Below, in pieces: positions 3,071-63,715 of a DNA stretch of 64,000 nucleotides (positions are counted from its first letter, which is position 1; each line of letters begins with the position of its first letter). Location: assembly GCF_001194135.2 (NCBI RefSeq), contig NC_068988.1:96857819-96921818 (forward strand), in the 5' to 3' direction. A program made the position numbers and the translations under genes. Source of the stretch: Octopus bimaculoides. Taxonomy: Eukaryota. The notes beneath the pieces are model-generated. The model searched no databases. It saw nothing but the letters and a program-made list of their open reading frames with translations, and was not told the DNA's origin.

Positions 3071-4094
3071 TATATATATATACTTGGGTGCAGGACGTCA
3101 CCAACGGTGCAAACAGCATGAAATACGTAAACAAACGAGTTAAATATATAAGCAACGAGAAAAAAATGGAAAACAGGACAAGTAAACACAGAGAAAGGAC
3201 TCTTCCTCGGTTGTTGGTTGGTCTGTCTACTCCTCAGTATGTATTTGTGTGTCTGTGTTTGTACCCCATCCCTACCATCGCTCGACAACTGATGTTGGTG
3301 TGTTTACGCCCCCGTAACATAGCGGTTCGGCAATAGGTACCAATAGAATAAATACTAGGCTTACAAAGAATAACTCCTAGGGTTGATGATTTGTTCGACT
3401 AAAGGCGGTGCTCCAGCATGGAATGATACAAGTAAGAGAACTAAAAGAATCTGCACATAAAATGAGTTTGCTTTTTGTTTTTGTCGCAGATGGCTTGGCT
3501 AAAGTTGTGTTTGTGACTTACAACAGTTTACCGGATCTTATGCCAACGATAAAGACGGGTACACCGGACGTTCAAAAGGATGTTAAAATCTACAGCAAGA
3601 TCATTAGCGCATCTGTTGCTAATTATCATGGAGAGGTGCTCCGAGAACCTGTGGAGTTTTCTATGGAACACACTAAGGTACGCACAACTTCTCTCTTCGT
3701 TTTTCTCTTTCCTCTTCTGTCTCCTCTCATTCACCTCTCCTACATCTTCTCCTTTGTTGCTTCCCTTTTCTCTCTTTCTTTTTCCTTCCTCCATTCTCTC
3801 TCTTGCACACACACACACACACACACACACGTATTATGTCTATATGTGTGATATATGAGCGCACACAGACACACACATGTACAGATGCACCCCTCTATAC
3901 CTATGCATACAGACGTGGCCGCACGTACTTGTGCGTCTGCTATATATATACACACAGTGTTTGTGAAGTATCTATATACACAGCATACACACACACACAC
4001 ATCTGTATGTAAATACATATATGTATACGGACGTATATATATAAGTGTTTCTCTTCCCTTGTCTTGTGTATGTATGAGAGAGAGAGAGAGAGAG

Positions 4095-9696: not shown

Positions 9697-10882
9697 TTGG
9701 GAAAACAAATTTCCAAATCAATCAGGCGTAACCCTACAGCGTTATATGCATCTACATATCGTACTTTTGGGTCTTATTTATCGCATAAGTCAGCGTCGAA
9801 TCAGCGACACCAAAGAAACGGCGCCAAAATTTGAAACCACTGTTCTCAGCTCGATGTACTCTAAGGTCAACTTGCACTTCAAACTCCTGGGTTCGATAAA
9901 GCAAATAACAATTGATGATTAAGTTTATATAATACTCCCATCTTAAATATGTGACATGACTCTAAGACAGATTATTATTATCATTTCTATGATGGATGGT
10001 CGAAACGGTAGAGCTTGGACAATATGTCTTGCCGCATTTAATTCATTGCCTTTGCATTGTGTGTTCAAATCCTTTTGAAGTCAACGTCGTCTTCAATCTC
10101 TCCGGCTTCGCTAAAGTTTAGTTCCAGTCAAGTACTAGAATCGGTAATATCAAATATCTTCTTCTCCTCAAAGAGGCCCTGAACCTAAATTAGAAACGGT
10201 TATTGTTGGCGTTGTTGTTGTTATCGTCGCCGCTTTCTGGCATTCAGAACTATTGACTATTAATGTTATTTCTTAAAAAGAATGATTCATGTATTTGCTT
10301 TGCCTCTCTTCTTCAGCGCTTGGGTTAAAGGTGCCCTCTCCCTCGAAGTTATCCTTGGTCTGACGTGGGTCTTTGGATTCTTCTACATGAACGAAGCTAC
10401 TCTCGTCGTTGCGTACATCTTCACCATTTTAAACAGTCTACAAGGATACTTCATATACTGCTTCCACTGTCTTGGCAATAAGCAGGTTGGTATCGAGACG
10501 AATGTTTTCTCGGATTCTTATATATATATATATATATATATNNNNNNNNNNNNNNNNNNNNNNNNNNNNNNNNNNNNNNNNNNNNNNNNNNNNNNNNNNN
10601 NNNNNNNNNNNNNNNNNNNNNNNNNNNNNNNNNNNNNNNNNNNNNNNNNNNNNNNNNNNNNNNNNNNNNNNNNNNNNNNNNNNNNNNNNNNNNNNNNNNN
10701 NNNNNNNNNNNNNNNNNNNNNNNTATATATATGTATGTATATATTCTTGCGAATATTATTGATAATTTTATGAATTTATTAATAATATAAAAACACATAT
10801 ATATATATTTATTTGCTCAAAATAATAGAGCACTTAATATAAGTTCAGTTACATATTCTTTTAGAATATTCCTTATAAAAGT

Positions 10883-11829: not shown

Positions 11830-12498
11830 NNNNNNNNNNNNNNNNNNNNNNNNNNNNNNNNNNNNNNNNNNNNNNNNNNNNNNNNNNNNNNNNNNNNNNN
11901 NNNNNNNNNNNNNNNNNNNNNNNNNNNNNNNNNNNNNNNNNNNNNNNNNNNNNNNNNNNNNNNNNNNNNNNNNNNNNNNNNNNNNNNNNNNNNNNNNNNN
12001 NNNNNNNNNNNNNNNNNNNNNNNNNNNNNNNNNNNNNNNNNNNNNNNNNNNNNNNNNNNNNNNNNNNNNNNNNNNNNNNNNNNNNNNNNNNNNNNNNNNN
12101 NNNNNNNNNNNNNNNNNNNNNNNNNNNNNNNNNNNNNNNNNNNNNNNNNNNNNNNNNNNNNNNNNNNNNNNNNNNNNNNNNNNNNNNNNNNNNNNNNNNN
12201 NNNNNNNNNNNNNNNNNNNNNNNNNNNNNNNNNNNNNNNNNNNNNNNNNNNNNNNNNNNNNNNNNNNNNNNNNNNNNNNNNNNNNNNNNNNNNNNNNNNN
12301 NNNNNNNNNNNNNNNNNNNNNNNNNNNNNNNNNNNNNNNNNNNNNNNNNNNNNNNNNNNNNNNNNNNNNNNNNNNNNNNNNNNNNNNNNNNNNNNNNNNN
12401 NNNNNNNNNNNNNNNNNNNNNNNNNNNNNNNNNNNNNNNNNNNNNNNNNNNNNNNNNNNNNNNNNNNNNNNNNNNNNNNNNNNNNNNNNNNNNNNNNN
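11830..12498. other. Assembly gap (N run)
   Basis: Ns. Confidence 0.99.
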
Positions 12499-22157: not shown

Positions 22158-22246
22158 NNNNNNNNNNNNNNNNNNNNNNNNNNNNNNNNNNNNNNNNNNN
22201 NNNNNNNNNNNNNNNNNNNNNNNNNNNNNNNNNNNNNNNNNNNNNN
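22158..22246. other. Assembly gap (N run)
   Basis: Ns. Confidence 0.99.
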
Positions 22247-35805: not shown

Positions 35806-36954
35806 ATGAAAATCTTACGTTGGCGAATCAATATTTGCCAGTGGGCAAGCAACTTACGTTTCTCTCTCAACACCACTTGCGATCTCATCAAATTAATGTA
35901 TTTCAGTCTCTGTTACAACGCGTTCACCTCACCCAGTCTAATTCTAGAGACTGGTTTGGAACCAGTTTTTTGGATCGTGGACCACTTTGCCAAGTACATG
36001 GGACCCATTCTGATGTTTATTGTGTTTGCGTTGTGTAGCATTGGTCTTGTTATATTTTATGTGATTATGATACCTCGGTACCTTTCTTATGGTTGGCACT
36101 GGTTCCTACCGAATTTCATCTTTGGAAATTGGTTGTTGGTTAACACAGTATTCAATTATGTGATGGGCTGTCGCACGAATCCAGGCCACCCACCTCAGAT
36201 TGTTCCCGAAGTGGTGTCCATCTGCAAACGTTGTATTTCACCGAAACCACCCCGGGCCCATCATTGCAGCGTTTGTAAGAAGTGTGTTCTTCGAATGGAC
36301 CATCACTGCCCTTGGCTCAACAACTGTGTTGGCTTCTACAATCACCGTTATTTCTTTCTATACATGGTCTACATGATGTCCGGCTGTCTCTATGCATGTT
36401 TTCTTTTCTATCCATTATTCTACGATAATTTTTATGTCGGCAAAGAAGTCGTATTCCACGGAGTACTGTATCCCCTTAACATGGCTTACCAGTTTTGGAT
36501 GTCTAAAAACAAAAGCTACACATACATAGCTATCTCTAATGGTACTTCTGTGAAACGAACTCCTCCTCCTCAATCTTTCAACCAGCTCACATTATCGGAT
36601 CAGATTTATCATCATTCTGTGATTTTTGTGTTTTTCCTGGGGTTTGGCTGTGTTATAGCCCTGAGCATCCTCTCTTTGTGGCATGCACGCCTTGTGAGTC
36701 GTGGTGAGACTAGTATTGAAGTTCACATTAACAAAAATGAAAGGAAAAGGCTTAAAAAACTTGGACAGACCTATGTGAATCCTTATGATTTTGGTTTTGT
36801 CCAGAACTGGAAGTTATTCTTTGGCCTGACTGAAGGTAGGACATTCTGGCGTCACATTCTCTTTCCATCTCGACACAAGCCTCCAGGAAATGGTTTACAG
36901 TGGAAAACAACTACATTTACTGTGGATAATTTTGAAAATATTCATGTGTTGTGA
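35806..36954 (+). CDS. ZDHHC16: DHHC palmitoyltransferase ZDHHC16, uninterrupted CDS, 382 aa
   Basis: Cys-rich domain CKRCISPKPPRAHHCSVCKKCVLRMDHHCPWLNNCVG plus ZDHHC16-type motifs (EPVFWIVD, ISRGETSIE-like VSRGETSIEVHINK, NPYDFG..NWK.F, PSRHKPPGNG). Confidence 0.95.
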   Translation: MKILRWRINICQWASNLRFSLNTTCDLIKLMYFSLCYNAFTSPSLILETGLEPVFWIVDHFAKYMGPILMFIVFALCSIGLVIFYVIMIPRYLSYGWHWFLPNFIFGNWLLVNTVFNYVMGCRTNPGHPPQIVPEVVSICKRCISPKPPRAHHCSVCKKCVLRMDHHCPWLNNCVGFYNHRYFFLYMVYMMSGCLYACFLFYPLFYDNFYVGKEVVFHGVLYPLNMAYQFWMSKNKSYTYIAISNGTSVKRTPPPQSFNQLTLSDQIYHHSVIFVFFLGFGCVIALSILSLWHARLVSRGETSIEVHINKNERKRLKKLGQTYVNPYDFGFVQNWKLFFGLTEGRTFWRHILFPSRHKPPGNGLQWKTTTFTVDNFENIHVL

Positions 36955-42020: not shown

Positions 42021-44015
42021 TTAAGACGGAACATAAAAACAGACATTTAGAGAGAGAGGGAGGGAGGGAGAGAGAGAGAGAATGTATGAAAATTGTGTTA
42101 TTTGTTTTTTTAATTTTTAACCTTTAGTTAAAAAAATATCTTGAAATGTTATTAGAGAAATGTGTATTGTTTGCTGCTGATAAACAAACAAGAATAAAAT
42201 ATTGGAATGAATCTAAATGTGGCTTCTTGTCACTGCTTTGTTCTAATTCCTGACAAATTACTCTTCCTAAAATTATATGTTTTCCTTCTAAAGGTCAAAT
42301 GCTCTCAGTTATCAGGAAAAAAAGAATGTTGTCCTTGAAATTGGTTGTGAATCTGCTGTGATTTGGCTTTTCTCCTTTATTGGCTTTCAGTCAATTGTCT
42401 GTGAGGTTTTTGACGCCGTCCGCACAAAAGAATTAGCTTTGTTTTAGCTTATTTATCTTGTTGGTTTTTTTTACTTTTGGTTGCCTGGTGTTGTTGTTGT
42501 TGTTGCTTGTTGGTTAATATTACATTTATCTGAGAAGTCTCTTCACATTTCTGATGGTTAAACGTATTATTTTTACATTTATTCTAATAATCAATGTGTG
42601 TGTGTGTGTGTGTATTCACACACACTTACACAATGTATACAATAGATAGTACATCTGTATACAGATGTGTGTGTGTATACAGATGTGTGTGTGTATACAG
42701 ATGTGTGTGTGTGTGTGTGTGTGTGTATACATAAACTTAAATTTTGTCTAATTTTTAATTTTAAAACCTTTGAGAAAAAGCATGCCCAGAACTGTTATTT
42801 CTATTTTGAGATATTATTATTATTATTTAATTTTAAACTGTTTATTTTTATAAATTATTAAAAATGTCAGCATGATGCTCATCTTATGATGTTAAGCTAT
42901 TCTATGAATCCTGCTCTGCAAATGGTACTTCTTCTGGTTTACAATATGCAGTACTTCACACTTCCTAACATTTTATCACAGAATAGTTAGGAGTTTTTAA
43001 TAAAAGGGCAGCGAGTGTCCTATGACATATATCTAGATACAAATTTATCCGAAATTGAGATCCTGGTGATATAAACATTTACAAAAATAGCTTAAAACTG
43101 GTTCTGCGACATTTTTTTATCTGCATTCCCCTCTGTTGTTTTTGGCCGGGCCAGATACATTGTTCTGTAGTTACAGAATGGAAGGTCACTGTAGGTGGTG
43201 ATGGTCATTATTGATTTAGTTGTATAGATATGCTTGTGTGCACATGCATGTGTGTGTGTGTGTGTTGATATTGGGGAAGGATGTGTATATGTGTGATTAT
43301 GTATACATGTATGCGTGTGTGTGTATATATAATCCTCATCATTGCTCCAAGGTCCACTTTCCCAAGCTTGCATGGGTTAGAGGGAGTTTGTTTGAGCCAG
43401 ATTTTCTACAGCTGGATGCCTCTCCTCTCACCAACCCTTACCTGTTTCCAAGGTAACATGTTTCCCCATAATATTGGAAATGAACCACACAATATTGAGA
43501 CAAGGTAACACACACACACACATGGGATTCTTTCAGTTTCCATCTGCCAAATCCACTCACAAGGCTTGGTTGACGTGGGGTTATTGTAGAAGACACTTGC
43601 CCAAGGTGCTGTGCAATGGGACTGAACCCAAAACCGTGTGGTTGGGAAGTGAACTTCTTAAACACACAACCATTTCTGTATTTGTGTGTGTTTGAAGAAG
43701 TTCTCTTTGCAATCACGAGGTTCCAGATTCTGTCTCACAGCGGAGTATTTTGGAAGAGTTTGTTTACCGGAGGGAAGGACCATCATACGGTCAGAATCCA
43801 TCAGAGTAATTGAATTTGGAATTCAAAGGGTTTGACCTTTTTGCATAACATGTCACACTGATGCTTGGTTAAGAAGATCCTGTGGAATACTCAGCCGTTT
43901 GAACTCAATAAATTGGTGGTCATCCAATTGGATCCAATAACAAGAGTATGAGGTGCTGAAATGGACAGATTTCTATTTTATTTTTGAAACACACACGTAT
44001 GTATTCATATAATTA

Positions 44016-45680: not shown

Positions 45681-45765
45681 ATGTCTGATGATGATGAAGC
45701 TCCCCCTGATCTGGTCCCTGCAGATATTGTTAAGGTCCCTATAACAATCATCACAGGATTTTTAG
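45681..45765 (+). CDS. ZNG1: ZNG1 coding exon 1 (exon begins at acceptor 45664)
   Basis: [28 protein letters not shown]; gtaagg donor. Confidence 0.92.
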
Positions 45766-48700
45766 GTAAGGTCTACTGGATTCTGTGCTCTTAACATCCT
45801 TTACTTATTCTGCACCCTTTTCCACATACATTTTCTCTCCATCGAATATAGTTAGGGGGTGGGGGTGGGGTTGCAGTGGGATAGTTTTCCCTGAGTGACA
45901 CTTTTATGGTGGTGGCATTTCTAGCTATGCTGCTTAAAACTCTATAGCATTAAGGCCAGGTTGGGGGTGGAGATAGCAAACTCAAGGGCTGCCTCAAGCA
46001 GCACTTTTAGGTTGGTTATATAAGCTTGTTTTGGCCCAGGGTGGGTGATAAACTCAAAGCTTGCTTGGGCAGCACACACTCTGGCCTTACCACTGTTTGT
46101 GTTCTAGTTTTCATGCAATTTTACTGTTGTAGGATTTCATTGTAAAAATATTTTATGTAATTAACAAATATATTGCATAATTAATGTATTTTATAATCAA
46201 CAGGTGCCGGTAAAACAACTTTATTGAATTATATCTTGTCGGAAAACCATGGGAAACGAATTGCTGTTATTTTGAATGAATTTGGAGAAGGTAATTAATT
46301 TGGAGAAGGTAATTAATTTGGAGAAGGTAATTAATTTGGAGAAGGTAATTAATTTGGAGAAGGTAATTAATTTGAATTGTGTTACTGGCAGGGTTTCATT
46401 GTAAAGATTTGTTATGGAATGAACAATAGACCAAACTTTAAAAAATGAGTGCTGGAATTAATTTGACTGAAACCCTTTGAGCTGGTGCTCCAGCATGGCC
46501 GCAGTCAAAGCTGGAGTCTTCTTGTAGTCTCCTCTAACTGTCTCTGTTGTCCCTTTCCCTATCACCACAAGAATTGTGAACAATGTTTGATGGTGTCTTG
46601 AACAACCTGCACAGTGAATATTTTTAGAGCGAGGATGGTTTGTGCAGAGCCAGTCCCATTTTAACTTGTATTGGTCTGATGCAACGAGTGTCACGAGGTC
46701 AGTTGTTACCAGGAGGCAGAAGTTGTAAATGAGCAGCCAAAAGAGCTGAAGATCCTCACCTGCCCTGGGTCTGATGATAATTAACCCCTAACTGGGATCC
46801 TAGCAGGTGTTTATTATTCTGGGTCAGGAATAGACCTGGGAACAGAAGTGGTAAAGTGGTGGCTGCACACTCTTCAAAACTCTGAAACTAGGGCTGCATT
46901 TGGGCCCAGGACAACATATTAGATTAAATGATTAGATTTTTTTAGGATTATACTGACCAAAGGACATGAATATAGTTTTGCCCCTGGAGTAATGTCAAGT
47001 AATCTGGACAGTAATTATAATTTCACTTTTGACCAGATTTTAGTTATTTTTATTCTTTTGTTTCAGGAAGTTCCATTGAAAAGTCTTTAGCAGTTGGTCA
47101 GAAGGGGGAATTATTTGAAGAATGGCTAGAATTACGAAATGGATGTTTGTGTTGCTCTGTCAAGTAAGTCATTTTACAGATGGTCTTGGTGGAGGCAAGG
47201 GTTGAGATGCTGTTGTTTAGACTTGGATTGATCAGACTTATAATTGAAGGCATTCCAGCCATGACCATCTTGTCTTTTTAGGAATCTGTTGGACTACATT
47301 AGCTAATTTTCTTTTTATTTTATATGAATATGAGGGCGTTTTAGCTCATCTTTAGCAAACCAAATGAACAGGACCTAATGAGGATATGGATCTGGAGATA
47401 ACCTCTCTTATAAATGTAATTGTTAAAAACACAAAACTATGTCAACAACAAACGAAAATCATTCATCAATGGAGGTGAGAATGCTGCATGTGCATTTCTG
47501 CCTGTCTGAGCTTTGTCAGTAGCATATACTCACTGACAACCACATGCTAACATAAAATGCATCACAACTGATACGGGAAAACAGTGATTGAAAAATCACT
47601 GGTGTTGCAGTTAGCTACTCAGTTGAGTGAAATTCTGTTATGTGCAATGACTGCATGCTACTGACAGAGTGCAATGAGACAGAAATGTGCATCTGGCATT
47701 CTCACTGCTGTTGATGGAGATTTTTGTCTGCTACTGATATTGTTTTTGTGTTTTTAAACACAGCATGTCCATAAGAGATATTATCTCTGGACAAATACTG
47801 CAGTTAATTTGCTTTTTCATGTATCTCCATTAAGCATGATACACAGCTGGCTGGTTTAATCTAATGATACTTCTATTGCATGTAACGGGTATTGCACTAC
47901 TACTATTACTACTACTGCTGATGAGGGTGGTGGTGGTGGTGATAATGCACAATTTGTTTTAGTTATTTTTTAATGTCATTGTATTTCTTTTTGCTTTGGT
48001 ATTGAACCGCCATTGTGGCCATGATGGAGCGCTGACTTGTGGATGTCACTAGTAGCACTGTGTAACAACAGTAACAAGCATAACAACTACTGCTACTATA
48101 ACTGTTACATTATATGATAATGTTTAAAATCTGTCTGTTCCAGGGACAACGGAGTGAAGGCCATAGAAAATCTCATGTTAAAGAAAGGAAAATTTGACTA
48201 TATCTTATTAGAGACGACGGGTTTAGCTGATCCAGGTGAGTAGATTAGCAAGCAGACAGTATTCTTGAAAGATTACCTTTTGGTGGAACCGACACGATCC
48301 AGGTGTGTGCTGGGGCACAGGTTTTAGTATAGGGAGTTTAGCTTTGCCAGCTGCATTAGTAAATGGTACCATGGAAAAAGTATCCGGGTCTTGGTGTAAA
48401 ATGGTTAAGGGTTATGGAAAGCATCCAGCCATGGAAATCCTACCTGTGCAGACACTGGAGCATTGTGCAGTCCTTGGATATGTTGGAGACTGTCAAACCA
48501 TCCAACTGATGGAACATGGATGCTGGAAAAAGATGATGGTGATAGTGTGTGTGTGTGTGTGTGTGTGTGTGAGAGCATGTTGGAAAATATTAGCTTGGCT
48601 GTACACAGGTGAGGCTTGGGGACAAGAAGGACTTCCAGTCATAGAAAATCTGTCTCACTATACTTTGTCTAACCCATGCAAACATAGAAAAGTGGACGTT

Positions 48701-51126
48701 AAATGATGATGTTCATAAATGTTGATGATTTTATATTTAGTGTACTGAAAGTATGTTTAGTAATTAAGCAGTAAACAAATATAATATTAAGTGATAATCA
48801 ATGTTATTAATTTTGCCTTGAAACCAAGCAAGTGAGGACAACACCCGACTGATTCAGCCTTTATAAGATTATATGGATACAGATTCATTGCAGAGACATT
48901 CTCTTATTTCACTAATGAGCAATTAAATATACACTGTAGTAAAGATTGTTTGCCAACATAACGTGGTTTAGGACGAATGTTGCTGTAATTTAGCCCCAGG
49001 AGACATCGTCTTCAGCTGGCTATATGGCACGATCTGTCGACACGATTGTGTCATATAGCCAGCTGGAGACGATGTCTCCTGGGGTTAAATTACAGCAACA
49101 TTCGTCCTAAACCAGGACGGCCATGTTATGTTGGCAAACAATCTTTACTCCAAAGTACTGTTGCTGAATATCTCTCGTGAGATTTAAAAATAGTAATTTT
49201 CGAAATAAATAATTTCTTGAACATTTACATGGAAAATTTTAAGAAATAGTCTCTTCTTAAAACTACAAATTTAGGAAAAATATCGAAATGTATTCTTTGC
49301 TTAGTTNNNNNNNNNNNNNNNNNNNNNNNNNNNNNNNNNNNNNNNNNNNNNNNNNNNNNNNNNNNNNNNNNNNNNNNNNNNNNNNNNNNNNNNNNNNNNN
49401 NNNNNNNNNNNNNNNNNNNNNNNNNNNNNNNNNNNNNNNNNNNNNNNNNNNNNNNNNNNNNNNNNNNNNNNNNNNNNNNNNNNNNNNNNNNNNNNNNNNN
49501 NNNNNNNNNNNNNNNNNNNNNNNNNNNNNNNNNNNNNNNNNNNNNNNNNNNNNNNNNNNNNNNNNNNNNNNNNNNNNNNNNNNNNCTTGAATCGGCCCCC
49601 TTTTTTTTTTTTTTCCTTTTCTTCATTATTTATTTCACGTTTCCCGTTTAATAATTTATACTCAAGAGGGCAGCGAGCTGGCAGAAACGTTAACACGCCG
49701 GGCGAAATGCTTAACAGTATTTCGTCTGCCGTTAGGTTCTGAGTTCAAATTCCGCCGAGGTCGACTTTGCCTTTCATCCTTTCGGGGTCGATCTAATCGA
49801 CTGGCCCCTCCCCCGAAATTTCGGGCCTAGAGTAGAAAAGAATAATTTATACTCAAACCAAGTCTCAAACTCCGAAATATGCATTTAATCTGATCGTCTT
49901 CGAGGATTCATACGATTCTGTGTTTTCTATATTTTAAAAAATAGACACATTTATAGTTATCTCAAATTTGTTTATGTGCAATTGCCAGTACACCATTTTG
50001 GGTGTGGCCGTTGCCAGTACCGCCTGACTGGCCTTCGTGCCGGTGGCACGTAAAAGCACCCACTACACTCTCGGAGTGGTTGGCATTAGGAAGGGCATCC
50101 AGCTGTAGAAACTCTGCCAAATCAGATTGGAGCCTGGTGTAGCCATCTGGTTTCACCAGTCCTCAGTCAAATCGTCCAACCCATGCTAGCATGGAAAGCG
50201 GACGTTAAACGATGATGATGATGATGATGAAGGTATGTGATTGAGCAATTATCGTTATAAGTTGATTATTGACCAGCAAATGACTGCTTAAACTAATATT
50301 ATGCAGTTAAATAAGACCACATTCTCTTTGTAATGTAGCATTATGAACATATTCTCGCAGAATGTCTGATTGACCGTTACAGTATGTTGTTCATGGAAAA
50401 ATTCACTTCAATTTCGTTTAGTATCACACTGTTGGACGGTGGACGGTCCATTCATAAGGACATTTGTAAGGAGACTCACTAAAATGTAGTGGGAGGAAAC
50501 TCAGTAGTACAGAGTTGCCTCCCTCTAAAAGTGTCTGTCTTGACGCAGATCTATAATTTACAAGAAATCTTAGCCGTAAACCTTTTTGGATATTATGTGC
50601 CCCTTACTTGGTTCTAGGACACTGAACTGCCCCTGAATTTAGATTAGAATCTAAAGGAAAGATCAGTAACATTATGCCTATAGCTAAATGATTGTCAGAG
50701 AAGCAAACTTGAAAAGAACACACACACACACACACATACACATGCATGTACGCACATACATACACACACACACACACACATATTGTTCTCCTATTACATC
50801 CATGTTTAACTCTGTCAGATGACACAAAACATGTCGTATACATGTATAATATTGCCAAAGGATTTGGGCATCAGATTTAGTTGCCCTTCCTGTTATTAAG
50901 TTTTCATGTGAATCTTATTAACTCTTGATGAGTTCTTTGGTCTTTTATTAACGAGCCCAGCACTACCAGGGTTTAACCTCCATTATTTTCACCATCTTTA
51001 TGTTTCTACCTCTGCCCCTGTTTGACTTTTGCCTGTGTCTTCTTTCTTCAGGACCAATTGCATCAATATTTTGGGTGGATGAAGAATTATGCAGTGATAT
51101 ATACTTGGATGGTAAGTAAATTCTGT

Positions 51127-51161
<35 letters not shown>

Positions 51162-51868
51162 TATAATATGTGCTTACCAACCACATGGTTCCGGGTTCAG
51201 TCCCATGCGCGGCACATTGGACAAGTGTCTTCTACTATAGCCTAGGACCGACCAAAGCCTTGTGAGTGGATTTGGTAGACGGAAACTGATAGAAGTATGT
51301 GTGTATATGTTTGTGTGTCTGTGTTTGTGCCCCCACCAACATTGCTTGACAACCGATGCTGGTGTGTTTACGTCCCCGTAGCTTAGCGCTTCAGCAAAAG
51401 AGACCGATGGAATAAGTTACCAGGCTTACAAAGAATAAGTCCTGGGGTCGATTTGCTCGACTAAAGACTCAAAACTAGCGATTCACATTGTAACCTCTAG
51501 AAATAATGGATTATATCTTGAAATATTTTGTCTTATCTTAATTTTTAATGATTTGTTTTGTAGCTTATTTTTATTGTTTTTCTACTTTTTACAGGTATAA
51601 TCACTATGATTGATGCCAAACATTGCTTACAGGTAAGATTATTATTATTATTCTTTTGGAAAGGAAATTGAGAGTGGAGAGGGAAGTGCTGTTCTCAAGT
51701 GAGTTTACTGAAAGGTGGGTGGAAGTTGTGAAAATGGCAAGAGTGGATGGTACCCCTCTAAGTGTAGACCTGTGAGTCAGAGAGAAGGAATTGGAGAGGG
51801 CACTTGCTCTTGGGCTGGTTATACGACACTGGCATAAGCCATGGGTTATGGTCTCACTTGGCTCCCTG

Positions 51869-51899
<31 letters not shown>

Positions 51900-54800
51900 C
51901 CAAATCCGTAATCACATGCTGATATGATATTTTTAATTAATCCATGCCGAAACTAATTGATTAATAAATTCATTCTATTTCCTCAGTTTTAAAGTTTGTT
52001 TTTCTTTGCAGCATCTAAACGAAGTGAAAAAAGATAACCTGGTTAACGAATGTGCAAGGTAAGCCAAGGTCAGCCAAGACATTGAATTGAGTGTAAAGTA
52101 GGGAGAGTTATTTAAGAGAAATAAAAGTCATCTGTTTTTTCCATGCTGGCATGGATCGGACGGTTTGACAGGAGCTCCAACCAACAGCAGTATGGGAAAT
52201 GAAGGTCAATTGATGGTGATTATAAACCAGTCTCCCCTGTCTGCTTTGGCATAGTTTCTGTGGCTGAATCCACTTTCTAATGTCAGCCATTTCACAGAGT
52301 GAGCTTGGTGCTTTTTATGTGGCACCAGCACTGGTGAGGTCACCAAGTAACTTGTAAGACAAAGAGACTCCCTCCCCCCAGCTGAAGTGATGTGGGGGTG
52401 GGGGTAGTATTGAAGTTGGTGGCTTTTTGCTTGATGATGAAAGGTTAAAGTATGGTAGACCAACAGGAGCAGATGTCTTTCTTGAGAGGAGATATAAATT
52501 TTACAAAGGACATAGATTGTTTACTCACACATGTATTACATACTTACTGGATAGCCATGGCTGGAATGCTCTTTGATTATTAATTGATCCGTTCAATCAG
52601 AGTTGACCAACAACAACAATAATAAATAACTTCAATAACACAGTCACCATGACTTACAACCTTAACAATCACCTCTCTCATCACCATGACCACCACCACA
52701 AATAACAACAATTCTACCTCCAGCAACATCACCGCCACCACCACCACCACCATCATTATATTCATTGTCCCTTAAAGTCACATGACTACTGCTACTGCTA
52801 ATTCTATAACACTGTCAGTACATTCAACAAGGACCATGGCAACAAGTAGGAAGAAAAACAGAAAAAGAAAAAAAACACCCCAAAAATAAGAAGAAAAAAA
52901 AAAGAAATGGCCAACAGTAAAGAATAAATTCAATTTTGAGGCATTTTTGAAGTTTGAGAATCATTTCCGTTGAAATGTTGTTGATGTTGTTCTTAATGCT
53001 GTTGTAAAGTTTGTAGCTAGCAGTGATGATGATGATGGTGGTGGTGGTGATGTTGTTTCCTTGCAGTGTGTTCTGATGAGAAAATGATTTTGATTGTGGA
53101 GATGTTGCTGCAGGGGAAAGTGGGGGTTTTTTTTTTGTTAGTTTGTGTGTTTTATTTGTCCACAAGTTTTTAAACATAACTACAGTGATTTTGTTCCACT
53201 TACTTCCGCAGATACCATGTCATTGCATGAAGATTATATTCTTAAAACTCTCTTTGTGTGCATGTATGTGTATGTGTGTGCATATACATACATATATATA
53301 ATAGAAAAATGTTTCAAAAAGAAAGTAGAAACTACACGTGGGAAAGATATGGGGAAAGTAAGGAGAATAAAGATAAAAATGCACATTGAATATCAAAAAA
53401 ATAAAGGCTTTTTTATGAAAAATAGTGATAAATAAATACAATTAGATGAACTGAGGTAGAATTAAGAGGAATAAAAATCATTATTTTGAATTGTTAAAGA
53501 GATTCAAAGTCAGGTACATCAACATGTCAGATGTCAGAATGGCTGGTTACATTAACATGGGGTTCACAGTGATGTAAAACAACCATGAAAGTAGCAAGTG
53601 TTGGTACAATACTGTAGAAATCTAAGCACCAAATCGAATTTAAACCATAGATCTGACTTGGGGTTGGTTCTAGGTGTGGTGTAGGTATAAGTAAGAACTG
53701 AAATGGGGTTTAGAATTTACAACAGCTGTTTCATTAGAACTTTATGGATGTATTCATAGCATAAATCCACCATTTTCAAGTAAAAATTGAAACAGGTATA
53801 AACAGGTGAGGTAAATTTTTGATGGTGTCATTATCCAACAACAGATAGATAGGTCATCATTCAATGTCATAGGATATCCTTTTCTAACTGTTGTTGGTTG
53901 CCATCATCAAAGTTTTATATCCCCTGTTTATACCTGTTTAAAATTTTTGTCTGAAGATGGTGGATTATATGTTATGATGCAATCTCAAGACAAAGATATC
54001 TTTATGCTCATGCACATACATACATAAATAAATATGTACATATTTATCAATTAATAATTGATAAAAGAATAGGAGTTACATAATCACCTTCATTAGCTTA
54101 CAGCTGTTTCTGCTGTAAAAAAGCAATTCAATCAGAACTAAGTGCTCGTGCAAGATCATATAGTTTCCTCAGAGCCATTAAAATGAATATATATTTGCAC
54201 GCGTGCGTGTGTGTGTGTGTGTATACATGTGTGTGTGTGTGTGTGTATACATGTGTGTGTGTGTGTGTATCTATATATATAGCTATATATGTGTATATAT
54301 ATATAATTGTCTTTTACATTTCATATGCTTGTAGACAGATTGCATTGGCTGATCTTGTGGTTATCAATAAAGTGGATCTGGTCTCAAAAACAGAACTCTC
54401 ACAGGTGAAGGAGAGAATATCGTAAGTTAGCCAATAATTTTGCTGCATTTGCAACTCTCTCCATCTCCCCTCTTTCTCTCTTGCTCTTCTTCTCTACTTC
54501 CCCCTCTCTCTCATCATCTAGTGCCTCTCTTTCTTTTTCTCTCTCTTATTATATTTAAGGTTTTGCTTGTGTCTGAATATTATACTTCAATGAGAATCAA
54601 AACTATGAAAGTCGTCTCTTGGGTGGAAAGTGCAAGATTTAATTATTCTTTAATACACTCAAACAAAATGGATTCCAATGGATCTTTATTTCATTTTAAT
54701 ATTCATCATGCAAGATTCTTGGTACTTCGTTAGGAAAGACAAAATCACTACAGTCTTGGAATGGTTGGCGTTAGGAAGGGCATCCAGCTGTAGAAACACT

Positions 54801-58700: not shown

Positions 58701-58855
58701 ATTATATTATTTTATATTATATTATGTTATGTTATATTATGTTATGTTATGTTATATTTATGTATTTTATAAGGACTTAACACTTTATTCATCTTATTTC
58801 ATGTTTCCAGGACTATAAACTCTTTGGCAGAACTGATTGAAACCACTTATGGCAG
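45681..58855 (+). CDS. ZNG1: Zn-regulated GTPase metalloprotein activator (COBW/CBWD, COG0523), 3'-partial, 9 coding exons in window
   Basis: Exons 45681-45765, 46204-46290, 47067-47163, 48144-48235, 51052-51111, 51595-51632, 52012-52058, 54335-54421, 58811-58855 join in frame. Walker A GFLGAGKTT, NEFGE, CLCC (CXCC), [13 protein letters not shown]. No further exon (CobW_C domain) found before 64000. Confidence 0.95.
46204..46290 (+). CDS. ZNG1: ZNG1 coding exon 2
   Basis: [28 protein letters not shown]; cag/gtaatt. Confidence 0.95.
46279..46374 (+). repeat. 18-bp tandem repeat x5 spanning the ZNG1 exon 2 donor
   Basis: (aatttggagaaggtaatt)5; GT at 46291, 46309, 46327, 46345, 46363. Confidence 0.97.
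46554..46868. repeat. Unclassified interspersed repeat, copy 2 (core 46591-46811)
   Basis: Same orientation match to 2674-2894. Confidence 0.9.
47067..47163 (+). CDS. ZNG1: ZNG1 coding exon 3 (CXCC)
   Basis: [31 protein letters not shown]; cag/gtaagt. Confidence 0.95.
47385..47797. mobile_element. Degenerate ~400-bp palindromic (fold-back) element in ZNG1 intron 3
   Basis: Matching inverted blocks (aaaaacacaaaa, gtgagaatgc, tgtcagtagcat); centre cagtgatt-gaaa-aatcactg. Confidence 0.7.
48144..48235 (+). CDS. ZNG1: ZNG1 coding exon 4
   Basis: [30 protein letters not shown]; cag/gtgagt. Confidence 0.95.
48938..49149. mobile_element. Near-perfect ~210-bp palindromic element in ZNG1 intron 4
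   Basis: About 100-bp arms with about 4 substitutions and one ~9-nt indel; centre tgtcgaca. Confidence 0.9.
49307..49585. other. Assembly gap (N run)
   Basis: Ns. Confidence 0.99.
49666..49840 (+). mobile_element. SINE family A, young copy with 16-bp target-site duplication
   Basis: aataatttatactcaa at both 49650-49665 and 49841-49856. Confidence 0.9.
49985..50230 (+). mobile_element. SINE family B
   Basis: Near-identical to 41865-42020 body, with one upstream 66-bp unit. Confidence 0.85.
51052..51111 (+). CDS. ZNG1: ZNG1 coding exon 5
   Basis: [19 protein letters not shown]; cag/gtaagt. Confidence 0.94.
51170..51468 (+). mobile_element. SINE family C
   Basis: Aligns by eye with 21165-21572. 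Confidence 0.8.
51595..51632 (+). CDS. ZNG1: ZNG1 coding exon 6
   Basis: [12 protein letters not shown]; cag/gtaaga. Confidence 0.92.
52012..52058 (+). CDS. ZNG1: ZNG1 coding exon 7
   Basis: [15 protein letters not shown]; cag/gtaagc. Confidence 0.92.
53754..53977. mobile_element. Palindromic ~220-bp element in ZNG1 intron 7
   Basis: tcatagcataaatccacc..aaacaggtataaacagg versus cctgtttatacctgttt..ggtggattatatgttatga. Confidence 0.7.
54335..54421 (+). CDS. ZNG1: ZNG1 coding exon 8
   Basis: [28 protein letters not shown]; tag/gtaagt. Confidence 0.94.
54755..54905 (+). mobile_element. SINE family B
   Basis: Body plus (GAT)n tail. Confidence 0.82.
58811..58855 (+). CDS. ZNG1: ZNG1 coding exon 9
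   Basis: [14 protein letters not shown]; cag/gtgagt; corresponds to the SINGLGQILET segment of vertebrate CBWD. Confidence 0.88.
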
Positions 58856-59455
58856 GTGAGTTAATTTGGATTTTTGTTGTTGTTGATATTCTAGTTACTC
58901 CTTGGTTTGTCCCTGATTGAGAAGACCTATTGATCCAAGGCATTCCACACGACCACCCTGTCTTTCTTTGAGGGACATAGGACTATATTGTTTGATGCGT
59001 TCTTTCCTTCTACTTTCCTGTGTAAACATGTCTGGCCATTGGGGAAATATTACTTTTCTTGGAAACGGATGATGGTTGGTGGCAGAAAATATCCTTCAAA
59101 CTTTGACTCGCACAAGCATGGAAAAGTTTACATTTTCAAAAAAAAAAAAAAATTTTTAGGAGGAAAGAAAGAAGTGATGTGGAGAGGTGGAAAAATAGCA
59201 GTTAATGAAAGGAGATTAATTGATGGGTTGTTGTTTGGCCTCAGCCTACTTTAATGAATCAGATCATGCTGTCATGGGTTGGACGACTATTTATGCTTAT
59301 GGATGTTAATCTATGTTATCAACAACGTGTATTTCTGCAACTATACAAATGTGTAATTGGTGTGTGTTTGAATGTATGTGCATGTGCATGCATGTGTGTG
59401 TGTGTGTATCTGCGTGTGCATATAGGTGTCTATGTTTATATATATATATATACAT

Positions 59456-63320: not shown

Positions 63321-63715
63321 TGACTGGCTCCCATGCTGGTAGCACGTAAAAAGCACCATCCGAATGTGGTTGATGCCAGGTCCACCTGACTGGCTCTCGT
63401 GCTGGTGGCATGTAAAAAGCACCATCTGAGCGTGGCCAATACCAGTAACCCCTGACTGGTTGCCATGCTGGTGGCACGTAAAAAGTACTCTCTGAATGTG
63501 ATCGATGCCAGGCCTGCCTGACTGGCTCCTGTGCCGGTGGTATGTAAAAAGCACCCACTACACTCTTGGAGTGGTTGGTGTTAGGAAGGGCATCCAGCTG
63601 TAGAAACACTGCCAGATCAACTTGGAGCCTGGTGCAGCCATCTGGTTCACCAGACCTCAGTCAAACCATCCAACCCATGCCAGCATGGAAAACAGACATT
63701 AAATGATGATGAGGA
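63321..63715 (+). mobile_element. SINE family B with four 66-bp tandem units
   Basis: tgactgg units at 63321, 63387, 63453, 63519, then SINE body and gat tail. Confidence 0.82.

Follow-up and report, generated by a model that had tools for sequence, protein, structure and literature searches.

An 18-nt minisatellite reiterates the exon 2 splice donor of ZNG1 in the Octopus bimaculoides reference genome

The ZNG1 locus

We analyzed a 64,000-nt stretch of the Octopus bimaculoides genome (NCBI RefSeq assembly GCF_001194135.2, contig NC_068988.1, positions 96,857,819 to 96,921,818 of the forward strand), designated here as the window, in which a tandem array of an 18-nt unit lies across the end of one exon of a gene and presents its 5' splice site (donor) five times. 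Judged from its sequence, the host gene of the array is ZNG1 (CBWD), a CobW-type GTPase on the + strand. This name was given in a preliminary description of the same DNA, and it agrees with the cobW domain match, the Walker A, CxCC and docking motifs and the orthologues described below. The exons were rebuilt one by one by tblastn searches and manual splicing. A human ZNG1A sequence was used as the tblastn probe for exon location only, and the conclusions were drawn from the window's own translation. The exons found in the window are as follows (slashes mark exon-intron boundaries).

45681-45765, + strand: exon 1 (coding part, from the ATG), holding the ATG and the candidate METAP1-docking motif; the public annotated gene starts at the same ATG
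46204-46290, + strand: exon 2, 87 nt, with acceptor ...caacag/GTGCC and donor GAGAAG/gtaatt; carries Walker A, is 100% identical to the UniRef entry P0121 and falls within the cobW Pfam match
47067-47163, + strand: exon 3, with acceptor ...tttgtttcag/GAAGTT; encodes SSIEK...GCLCCSV(K), including the CxCC metal-binding motif
48144-48235, + strand: exon 4
51052-51111, + strand: exon 5
51595-51632, + strand: exon 6
52012-52058, + strand: exon 7
54335-54421, + strand: exon 8
58811-58855, + strand: exon 9

All boundaries of exons 1 to 9 are of the AG/GT type and are kept in O. sinensis, and the later exons lie outside the window. Intron 1 is 438 nt long, and intron 2 measures 776 nt from the first donor and 704 nt from the fifth. 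The spliced translation of the window (212 aa) matches the Pfam family cobW (PF02492) over residues 20-207 with E = 2.8e-55. The Walker A motif GAGKTT is encoded by exon 2, and the CxCC motif is found in exon 3 (NGCLCCSVK). At the N-terminus, an acidic run followed by psi-P-x-L-V-P fits by eye the motif with which ZNG1 docks onto METAP1 (PMC11672702), and docking is accordingly a prediction for the octopus protein. The translation is 100% identical to the O. bimaculoides UniRef entry P0121, 97% identical to the O. sinensis COBW domain-containing protein 1 and 87% identical to the Argonauta hians protein. The CobW C-terminal domain (PF07683) is present in the O. sinensis orthologue, and the exons after exon 9 lie beyond the window in O. 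bimaculoides.

Comparison of exons 1-9 with O. sinensis gave 13 synonymous and 7 non-synonymous changes, corresponding to a ratio of non-synonymous to synonymous proportions (pN/pS) of ~0.13. All nine donors and acceptors are retained relative to O. sinensis, and the nine exons are free of frameshifts and stops. The low ratio and the intact splice sites indicate that the gene is under purifying constraint. They also rule out an old pseudogene, a very recent event being outside the reach of this measure. The same data bear on the idea that the locus is a decaying or redundant ZNG1 copy, in which disruption of a donor would be harmless as a functional paralogue is located elsewhere. Vertebrates have several CBWD/ZNG1 paralogues, and the public models of the octopus gene are short (213 aa for P0121 and 322 aa for the GCA_001194135.2 model, versus 362 aa in O. 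sinensis). Against this, the constraint described above applies to all nine exons, the exon order and structure match those of the single O. sinensis gene, and a single O. bimaculoides protein was present among the homology-search matches. The short models can also be explained otherwise. The end of P0121 is a read-through of the exon 9 donor into intron 9 (GGC AGG TGA; window 58853-58859), and the 40-aa deficit of the 322-aa model corresponds to the length encoded jointly by O. sinensis exons 10 and 11, and these two small exons were probably missed. A redundant copy is therefore considered highly improbable.

The tandem array at the exon 2 donor

The array and the elements that it repeats are located as follows.

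46275-46374, + strand: tandem array, 5.6 copies of the 18-nt unit AATTAATTTGGAGAAGGT, the first copy spanning the exon 2/intron 2 boundary
46291-46292, + strand: donor 1 (GT), the sole donor giving the conserved EFGEG/SSIEK junction and the full-length frame upon in-silico splicing
46309, 46327, 46345 and 46363 (46309-46364), + strand: donors 2 to 5 (GT), which would lengthen exon 2 by 18, 36, 54 or 72 nt
46296-46298, + strand: first in-frame TAA, recurring each 18 nt at 46314, 46332, 46350 and 46368

Tandem Repeats Finder reported the array with a period of 18, 5.6 copies, 98% matches and a score of 193. The exact 18-mer AATTTGGAGAAGGTAATT occurs five times, starting at 46279, 46297, 46315, 46333 and 46351, and no further copy was found in the whole window with 2 mismatches allowed. 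None of 100 shuffled sequences contained any match at this tolerance, so that 0 copies are expected by chance versus 5 exact ones. Membership of the 18-mer in a dispersed repeat was ruled out, as the 18-mer is confined to the array within the window. Units 2 to 5 do not differ from each other, and among the tandem repeats in the window with a period of >10 nt the purity of the array is matched by only one other, a 2.6-copy array. The five tandem 18-mers at the exon 2 junction had been reported in the preliminary description, and both their number and their positions were reproduced by Tandem Repeats Finder and by exact matching. On record CM046608.1 of assembly GCA_001194135.2, the array corresponds to 96,904,093-96,904,192 (window coordinate + 96,857,818).

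Two further arrays of the window lie near or within the gene without exon overlap. One, 3 kb upstream of ZNG1, has the same period of 18 (TGTATACAGATGTGTGTG; 42656-42731, 4.4 copies, 85% matches), and the other, inside intron 9, has a period of 66 (63321-63555, 3.6 copies, 74% matches). In addition, a direct repeat of ~45 nt is found on either side of exon 2, at 46121-46167 in intron 1 and 46382-46426 in intron 2, with an alignment score of 48 versus 18.8 +/- 2.6 in shuffled sequences.

The five GT dinucleotides at 46291, 46309, 46327, 46345 and 46363 share the context GGAGAAG/GTAATTAATTTG and are identical from -12 to +12. RNA folding prediction gave no structure that singles out or masks any of them (z = 0.17), and masking of donors 2 to 5 by RNA structure was rejected on this basis. 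In the splicing literature the term "proximal" usually denotes the site nearest the 3' splice site, which is donor 5 here; the productive donor of ZNG1 is the most upstream one, nearest the exon.

Consequences for the reading frame

In-silico splicing from donor 1 to exon 3 (47067) gives the junction peptide NEFGEG/SSIEK, which is common to all orthologues. Each additional unit reads GGT AAT TAA TTT GGA GAA, and use of any of donors 2 to 5, or retention of intron 2, would bring in the TAA at 46296-46298 and yield a 59-aa product. Besides the docking motif, this product would retain only positions 1-39 out of the 180 in the cobW profile, including Walker A. The TAA, at codon 60, precedes at least 7 later exon junctions within the window. 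The predicted exon 2-exon 3 junction from donor k is GAATTTGGAGAAG + (k-1) x GTAATTAATTTGGAGAAG + GAAGTTCCATTG. These results uphold what the preliminary description had derived for the junction, namely five identical donors at a frame-neutral spacing of 18 nt, a stop at 46296-46298, a 59-aa product with the docking motif and Walker A, and an acceptor at 47066/47067. The public annotation of the locus has a coding sequence that starts from the same ATG and gives a 322-aa product; the TAA after donor 1 must therefore be bypassed in that model.

Products of the alternative donors were sought among known proteins. An exact look-up of the 59-aa truncated product in a collection of 15 billion proteins gave no match, and neither did a look-up in the protein collection of a 42-aa open reading frame that crosses the repeat in another frame (MNLEKVI...). 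When the 62-aa exon 2-3 peptide was used for a homology search, no match exceeded 87% identity. A search with the N-terminal 85 aa, intended to find short fragments ending in EFGEGN or running into SSIEK, returned nothing above 84% identity and none from O. bimaculoides. The collection holds no transcript-derived ZNG1 of any octopus species, the O. sinensis/O. vulgaris cluster consisting of NCBI genome-annotation members only, and the absence of O. bimaculoides isoforms from it is thus uninformative.

Comparison with other octopods

The orthologous loci of O. sinensis (L001), O. vulgaris (L003, reached via the longer isoform P0243) and A. hians (L002) were compared with the window. The preliminary description had suggested counting the repeat in other Octopus species, and the count was 1.6 copies each in O. 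sinensis and O. vulgaris, versus 5.6 in the one assembly of O. bimaculoides. In both of these species the junction is GAATGAATTTGGAGAAG/GTAATTAATTTGAATTGTG, a single donor followed by a second AATTTG. The A. hians junction is GAATTTGGTGAAG/GTAATAACGG, with one donor, no repeat and no second AATTTG. The extra donors were sought in the O. sinensis, O. vulgaris and A. hians loci and were absent from all three. The array is thus specific to the O. bimaculoides reference among these octopods, and its absence from the other three indicates that it is not a conserved regulatory device. Of the marks of conserved regulated unproductive splicing, in which a poison donor is coupled to nonsense-mediated decay (NMD), the locus shows the premature stop but lacks the conservation across species.

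The pairwise alignment of the window with the O. sinensis locus has collinear flanks with few substitutions and small indels, and the sole large difference is one gap of 72 nt. This insertion in O. bimaculoides is exactly four units long. It is located at a 10-nt imperfect direct repeat, AAT[G/T]AATTTG (AATGAATTTG and AATTAATTTG), whose two copies are 18 nt apart and are present in the other Octopus species. The sequences of O. sinensis and O. vulgaris thus indicate that the ancestral Octopus already carried the imperfect direct repeat, and the identity of units 2 to 5 suggests that the expansion is recent.

Other features of the gene were compared at the same loci. A G at position +5 is missing from the exon 2 donor in all four octopods, the sequence being GTAATT in the three Octopus species (46291-46296; L001 3591-3596) and GTAATA in A. 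hians (L002 ~2464); GTAAG or GTGAG is found at the eight remaining ZNG1 donors of the window. The direct repeat flanking exon 2 is also found in O. sinensis (L001 3425-3466 and 3621-3662), where 21 nt are exact (GCAGGATTTCATTGTAAAGAT), and none was seen in the A. hians flank. It may go back to an older local duplication around exon 2 or represent paired intronic elements. Intron 2 is 776 nt long in O. bimaculoides (46291-47066) versus 4366 nt in O. sinensis (L001 3591-7956). Intron 9 is ~39 kb long in O. sinensis (L001 35639-74669) and extends past the window end in O. bimaculoides.

Reliability of the copy number

The array might be an artefact or might have a wrong copy number, in which case the true genome would contain one or some other number of units and the five would have been produced when a period-18 repeat was assembled from short reads or when a gap in it was closed. 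The assembly was obtained by Hi-C scaffolding of the 2015 Illumina shotgun contigs (PMC9068888), which counts in favor of this explanation, and four N runs of irregular length in the window mark a short-read scaffold assembly:

10542-10723: N run
11830-12498: N run
22158-22246: N run
49307-49585: N run, in ZNG1 intron 4

At 100 nt, the array is close to both the read length and the limit of what such reads resolve, and its units are perfectly identical. In addition, a look-up of the neighboring DHHC open reading frame and of a 10-kb flank matched GCA_001194135.2 alone, at a locus byte-identical to the window. On the other hand, the nearest N gap is >2.9 kb from the array, and the usual error of short-read assemblers with tandem repeats is collapse, not expansion. 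Moreover, real slippage produces what is seen here, an in-register insertion exactly four units long at a microhomology that was already in place. An artefact or a wrong copy number is regarded as unlikely. As the contigs are short-read based, the number of units comes from one assembly, and the copy number of five is provisional.

Known junction-spanning repeats and donor choice

Minisatellites that span an exon-intron junction are known from human F7, IFI6, CBS, LMNB2 and PDGF (Borensztajn et al., 2006, PMC1557585). The octopus arrangement is a further case of this type, in which the first unit lies across the boundary and the 5' splice site is reiterated. As in intron 7 of F7 (IVS7), the first unit holds the exon end and the intron start (exon 2 ends at 46290, inside unit 1), and the downstream units copy the authentic donor exactly, giving five GGAGAAG/GTAATTAATTTG sites. 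In F7 intron 7 (37 bp, 5 to 9 copies), LMNB2 and PDGF, the most upstream donor alone is used, and the F7 pseudo-sites are silent even after strengthening, while IFI6 and CBS splice from the second and third donors as well as from the authentic one (PMC1557585).

The likeness to F7 extends to the order of the sites, an authentic donor followed by identical pseudo-donors (4 to 8 in F7 and 4 in octopus ZNG1), and in both genes the normal protein comes from the most upstream donor only. The copy number is polymorphic in F7 and differs between species in octopus ZNG1. The two arrays differ in unit length (37 nt in F7 versus 18 nt) and in the donor itself (UGG/GUGGGU versus AAG/GUAAUU). In addition, some F7 pseudo-sites keep the frame, whereas each octopus unit has an in-frame stop. 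Donor usage is known for the human gene and predicted for octopus ZNG1, a mollusc case. IFI6 (6-16) intron 2 and CBS intron 13 also contain junction-spanning repeats that reiterate the donor, but the copies are far more numerous, with about 26 donor sites in IFI6 and 15 to 20 repeats in CBS (PMC1557585). Use of the second and third donors, as in these two genes, is the likely form that any leakage in octopus ZNG1 would take. The IFI6 variants are in-frame insertions, whereas the extra units of octopus ZNG1 each bring a stop. GYNGYN donors and NAGNAG acceptors are similar in that short repeats at a splice junction provide close alternative sites, but these are 3 to 6 nt apart, usually conserved, and produce subtle in-frame variants, whereas the octopus sites are 18 nt apart and the alternatives unproductive.

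Exons engineered with two donors also resemble the octopus exon in having identical competing donors between which the choice is made by position (PMC9225289; Hodson et al., 2012, PMC3413131). They differ in being artificial, in having been assayed in human cells or extracts, and in carrying two sites rather than five, at wider spacing and with consensus donors stronger than GUAAUU. Under exon definition, where the introns are longer than ~250 nt, the 5' splice site nearest the upstream 3' splice site is favored, and in exon-defined minigenes with two identical 5' splice sites the upstream site was the only one used; under intron definition, where the introns are short, preference shifts to the downstream 5' splice site (Carranza, Shenasa and Hertel, 2022, PMC9225289). 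This rule reconciles older conflicting data on donor choice. Since both introns that flank octopus exon 2 exceed 250 nt, exon definition, and with it the use of donor 1, is predicted.

We propose with moderate confidence that the array is a recent 18-bp minisatellite expansion, in the O. bimaculoides lineage or in one allele, with donor 1 making the mRNA, and that it is neutral or mildly hypomorphic. Replication slippage or unequal exchange at the 10-nt imperfect direct repeat would explain the addition of four perfect units (72 nt), which left the authentic donor followed by four identical pseudo-donors. Exon 2 (87 nt, internal, between introns of 438 and 776 nt) would be recognized by exon definition, leading to the choice of the donor nearest the upstream 3' splice site, donor 1, and normal ZNG1 mRNA would still be produced. 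The remaining donors, 2 to 5, would either stay silent or contribute a minor ladder of isoforms in +18-nt steps, whose premature stop is expected to lead to their degradation. In vivo, use of the most upstream donor or of the first few is predicted. The effect of the array would then be neutral or at most mildly hypomorphic, and its copy number is probably variable. Precedent and the intron-exon architecture make this neutral, first-donor explanation the best supported. Among the interpretations raised in the preliminary description, strict first-donor use and a neutral polymorphic repeat fit best with the precedents (PMC1557585, PMC9225289), and copy-number-dependent control of functional ZNG1 mRNA has no support from conservation, the array being absent in three octopods.

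Several points weigh against this explanation. Donor usage in O. bimaculoides is predicted here wholly from vertebrate systems, and the contig-level sequence is short-read derived. The spacing of 18 nt is about half that of F7 (37 nt), and the units of the leaky precedents IFI6 and CBS are 12 and 31 nt long. A purine-rich GGAGAAG stands before each GT, and position-dependent enhancer effects of such a sequence would favor downstream donors. The exon 2 donor is of moderate strength (7 of 9 pairs with the U1 5' end, duplex of -6.6 kcal/mol) and is the only one of the nine ZNG1 donors without a G at +5. Finally, when two strong 5' splice sites are both occupied by U1, nearly all splicing takes place at the one closer to the 3' splice site (Eperon laboratory, PMC3413131), a rule that would point to donor 5 if applied here.

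An alternative explanation is a regulatory or hypomorphic allele, in which a substantial share of the pre-mRNA would be spliced at donors 2 to 5. The outcome would be degraded stop-containing transcripts or a 59-aa fragment that retains the P-loop along with the METAP1-docking motif, and functional ZNG1 would fall as copies rise, as reported for the CBS variable number tandem repeat. The identity of the donors from -12 to +12, with no structure masking any of them, is in line with such an allele, and so is the placing by each unit of a purine-rich GGAGAAG, a putative enhancer, upstream of the later donors. Weiss and colleagues are also said to have found in 2022 that ZNG1 loss is tolerated in zinc-replete vertebrates, so that a weak allele could persist. 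Further support comes from the preference in vitro of strong duplicated 5' splice sites for the one nearest the 3' splice site (PMC3413131) and from IFI6 and CBS, in which splicing extends to the second and third donors (PMC1557585). However, the array is absent in O. sinensis, O. vulgaris and A. hians, the exon-definition architecture predicts the upstream donor, the F7 pseudo-sites remained silent even when strengthened (PMC1557585), and the ZNG1 coding sequence is constrained (pN/pS 0.13). A regulatory or hypomorphic allele is hence thought doubtful. That the downstream donors are substantially used in living O. bimaculoides, which would make the array a copy-number-dependent dial on ZNG1 through NMD-sensitive isoforms and the reference animal a natural hypomorph, is distinctly unlikely.

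If the array is real, it represents a natural experiment on 5' splice-site choice, with five identical donors at 18-nt spacing on an exon-defined internal exon in a mollusc. Mis-splicing would be easily visible as an 18-nt ladder with a stop codon, and the locus could test outside vertebrates the upstream-donor rule obtained in human cells. The array would be of consequence for octopus biology only upon splicing from the later donors. Methionine aminopeptidase 1 receives zinc from ZNG1, and the tolerance of zinc limitation could be altered by a weak allele. The array is also a warning for annotation, as aligners and gene predictors can put the junction at any of five equivalent positions, four of which break the frame.

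Neighboring genes in the window

At a distance of 8.7 kb upstream of ZNG1, an uninterrupted open reading frame of 382 aa (35806-36954, +) encodes a predicted DHHC palmitoyltransferase (PF01529, E = 2e-30), for which the public record has a gene of a single exon. Exons resembling those of an adhesion-type G protein-coupled receptor are located at 3408-3851 and 10282-10480 (+). Their match to the GAIN domain is weak and falls short of the Pfam cut-off (E = 1.8e-4), and a match to the secretin-family seven-transmembrane domain (PF00002, E = 7.8e-8) covers the last helices.

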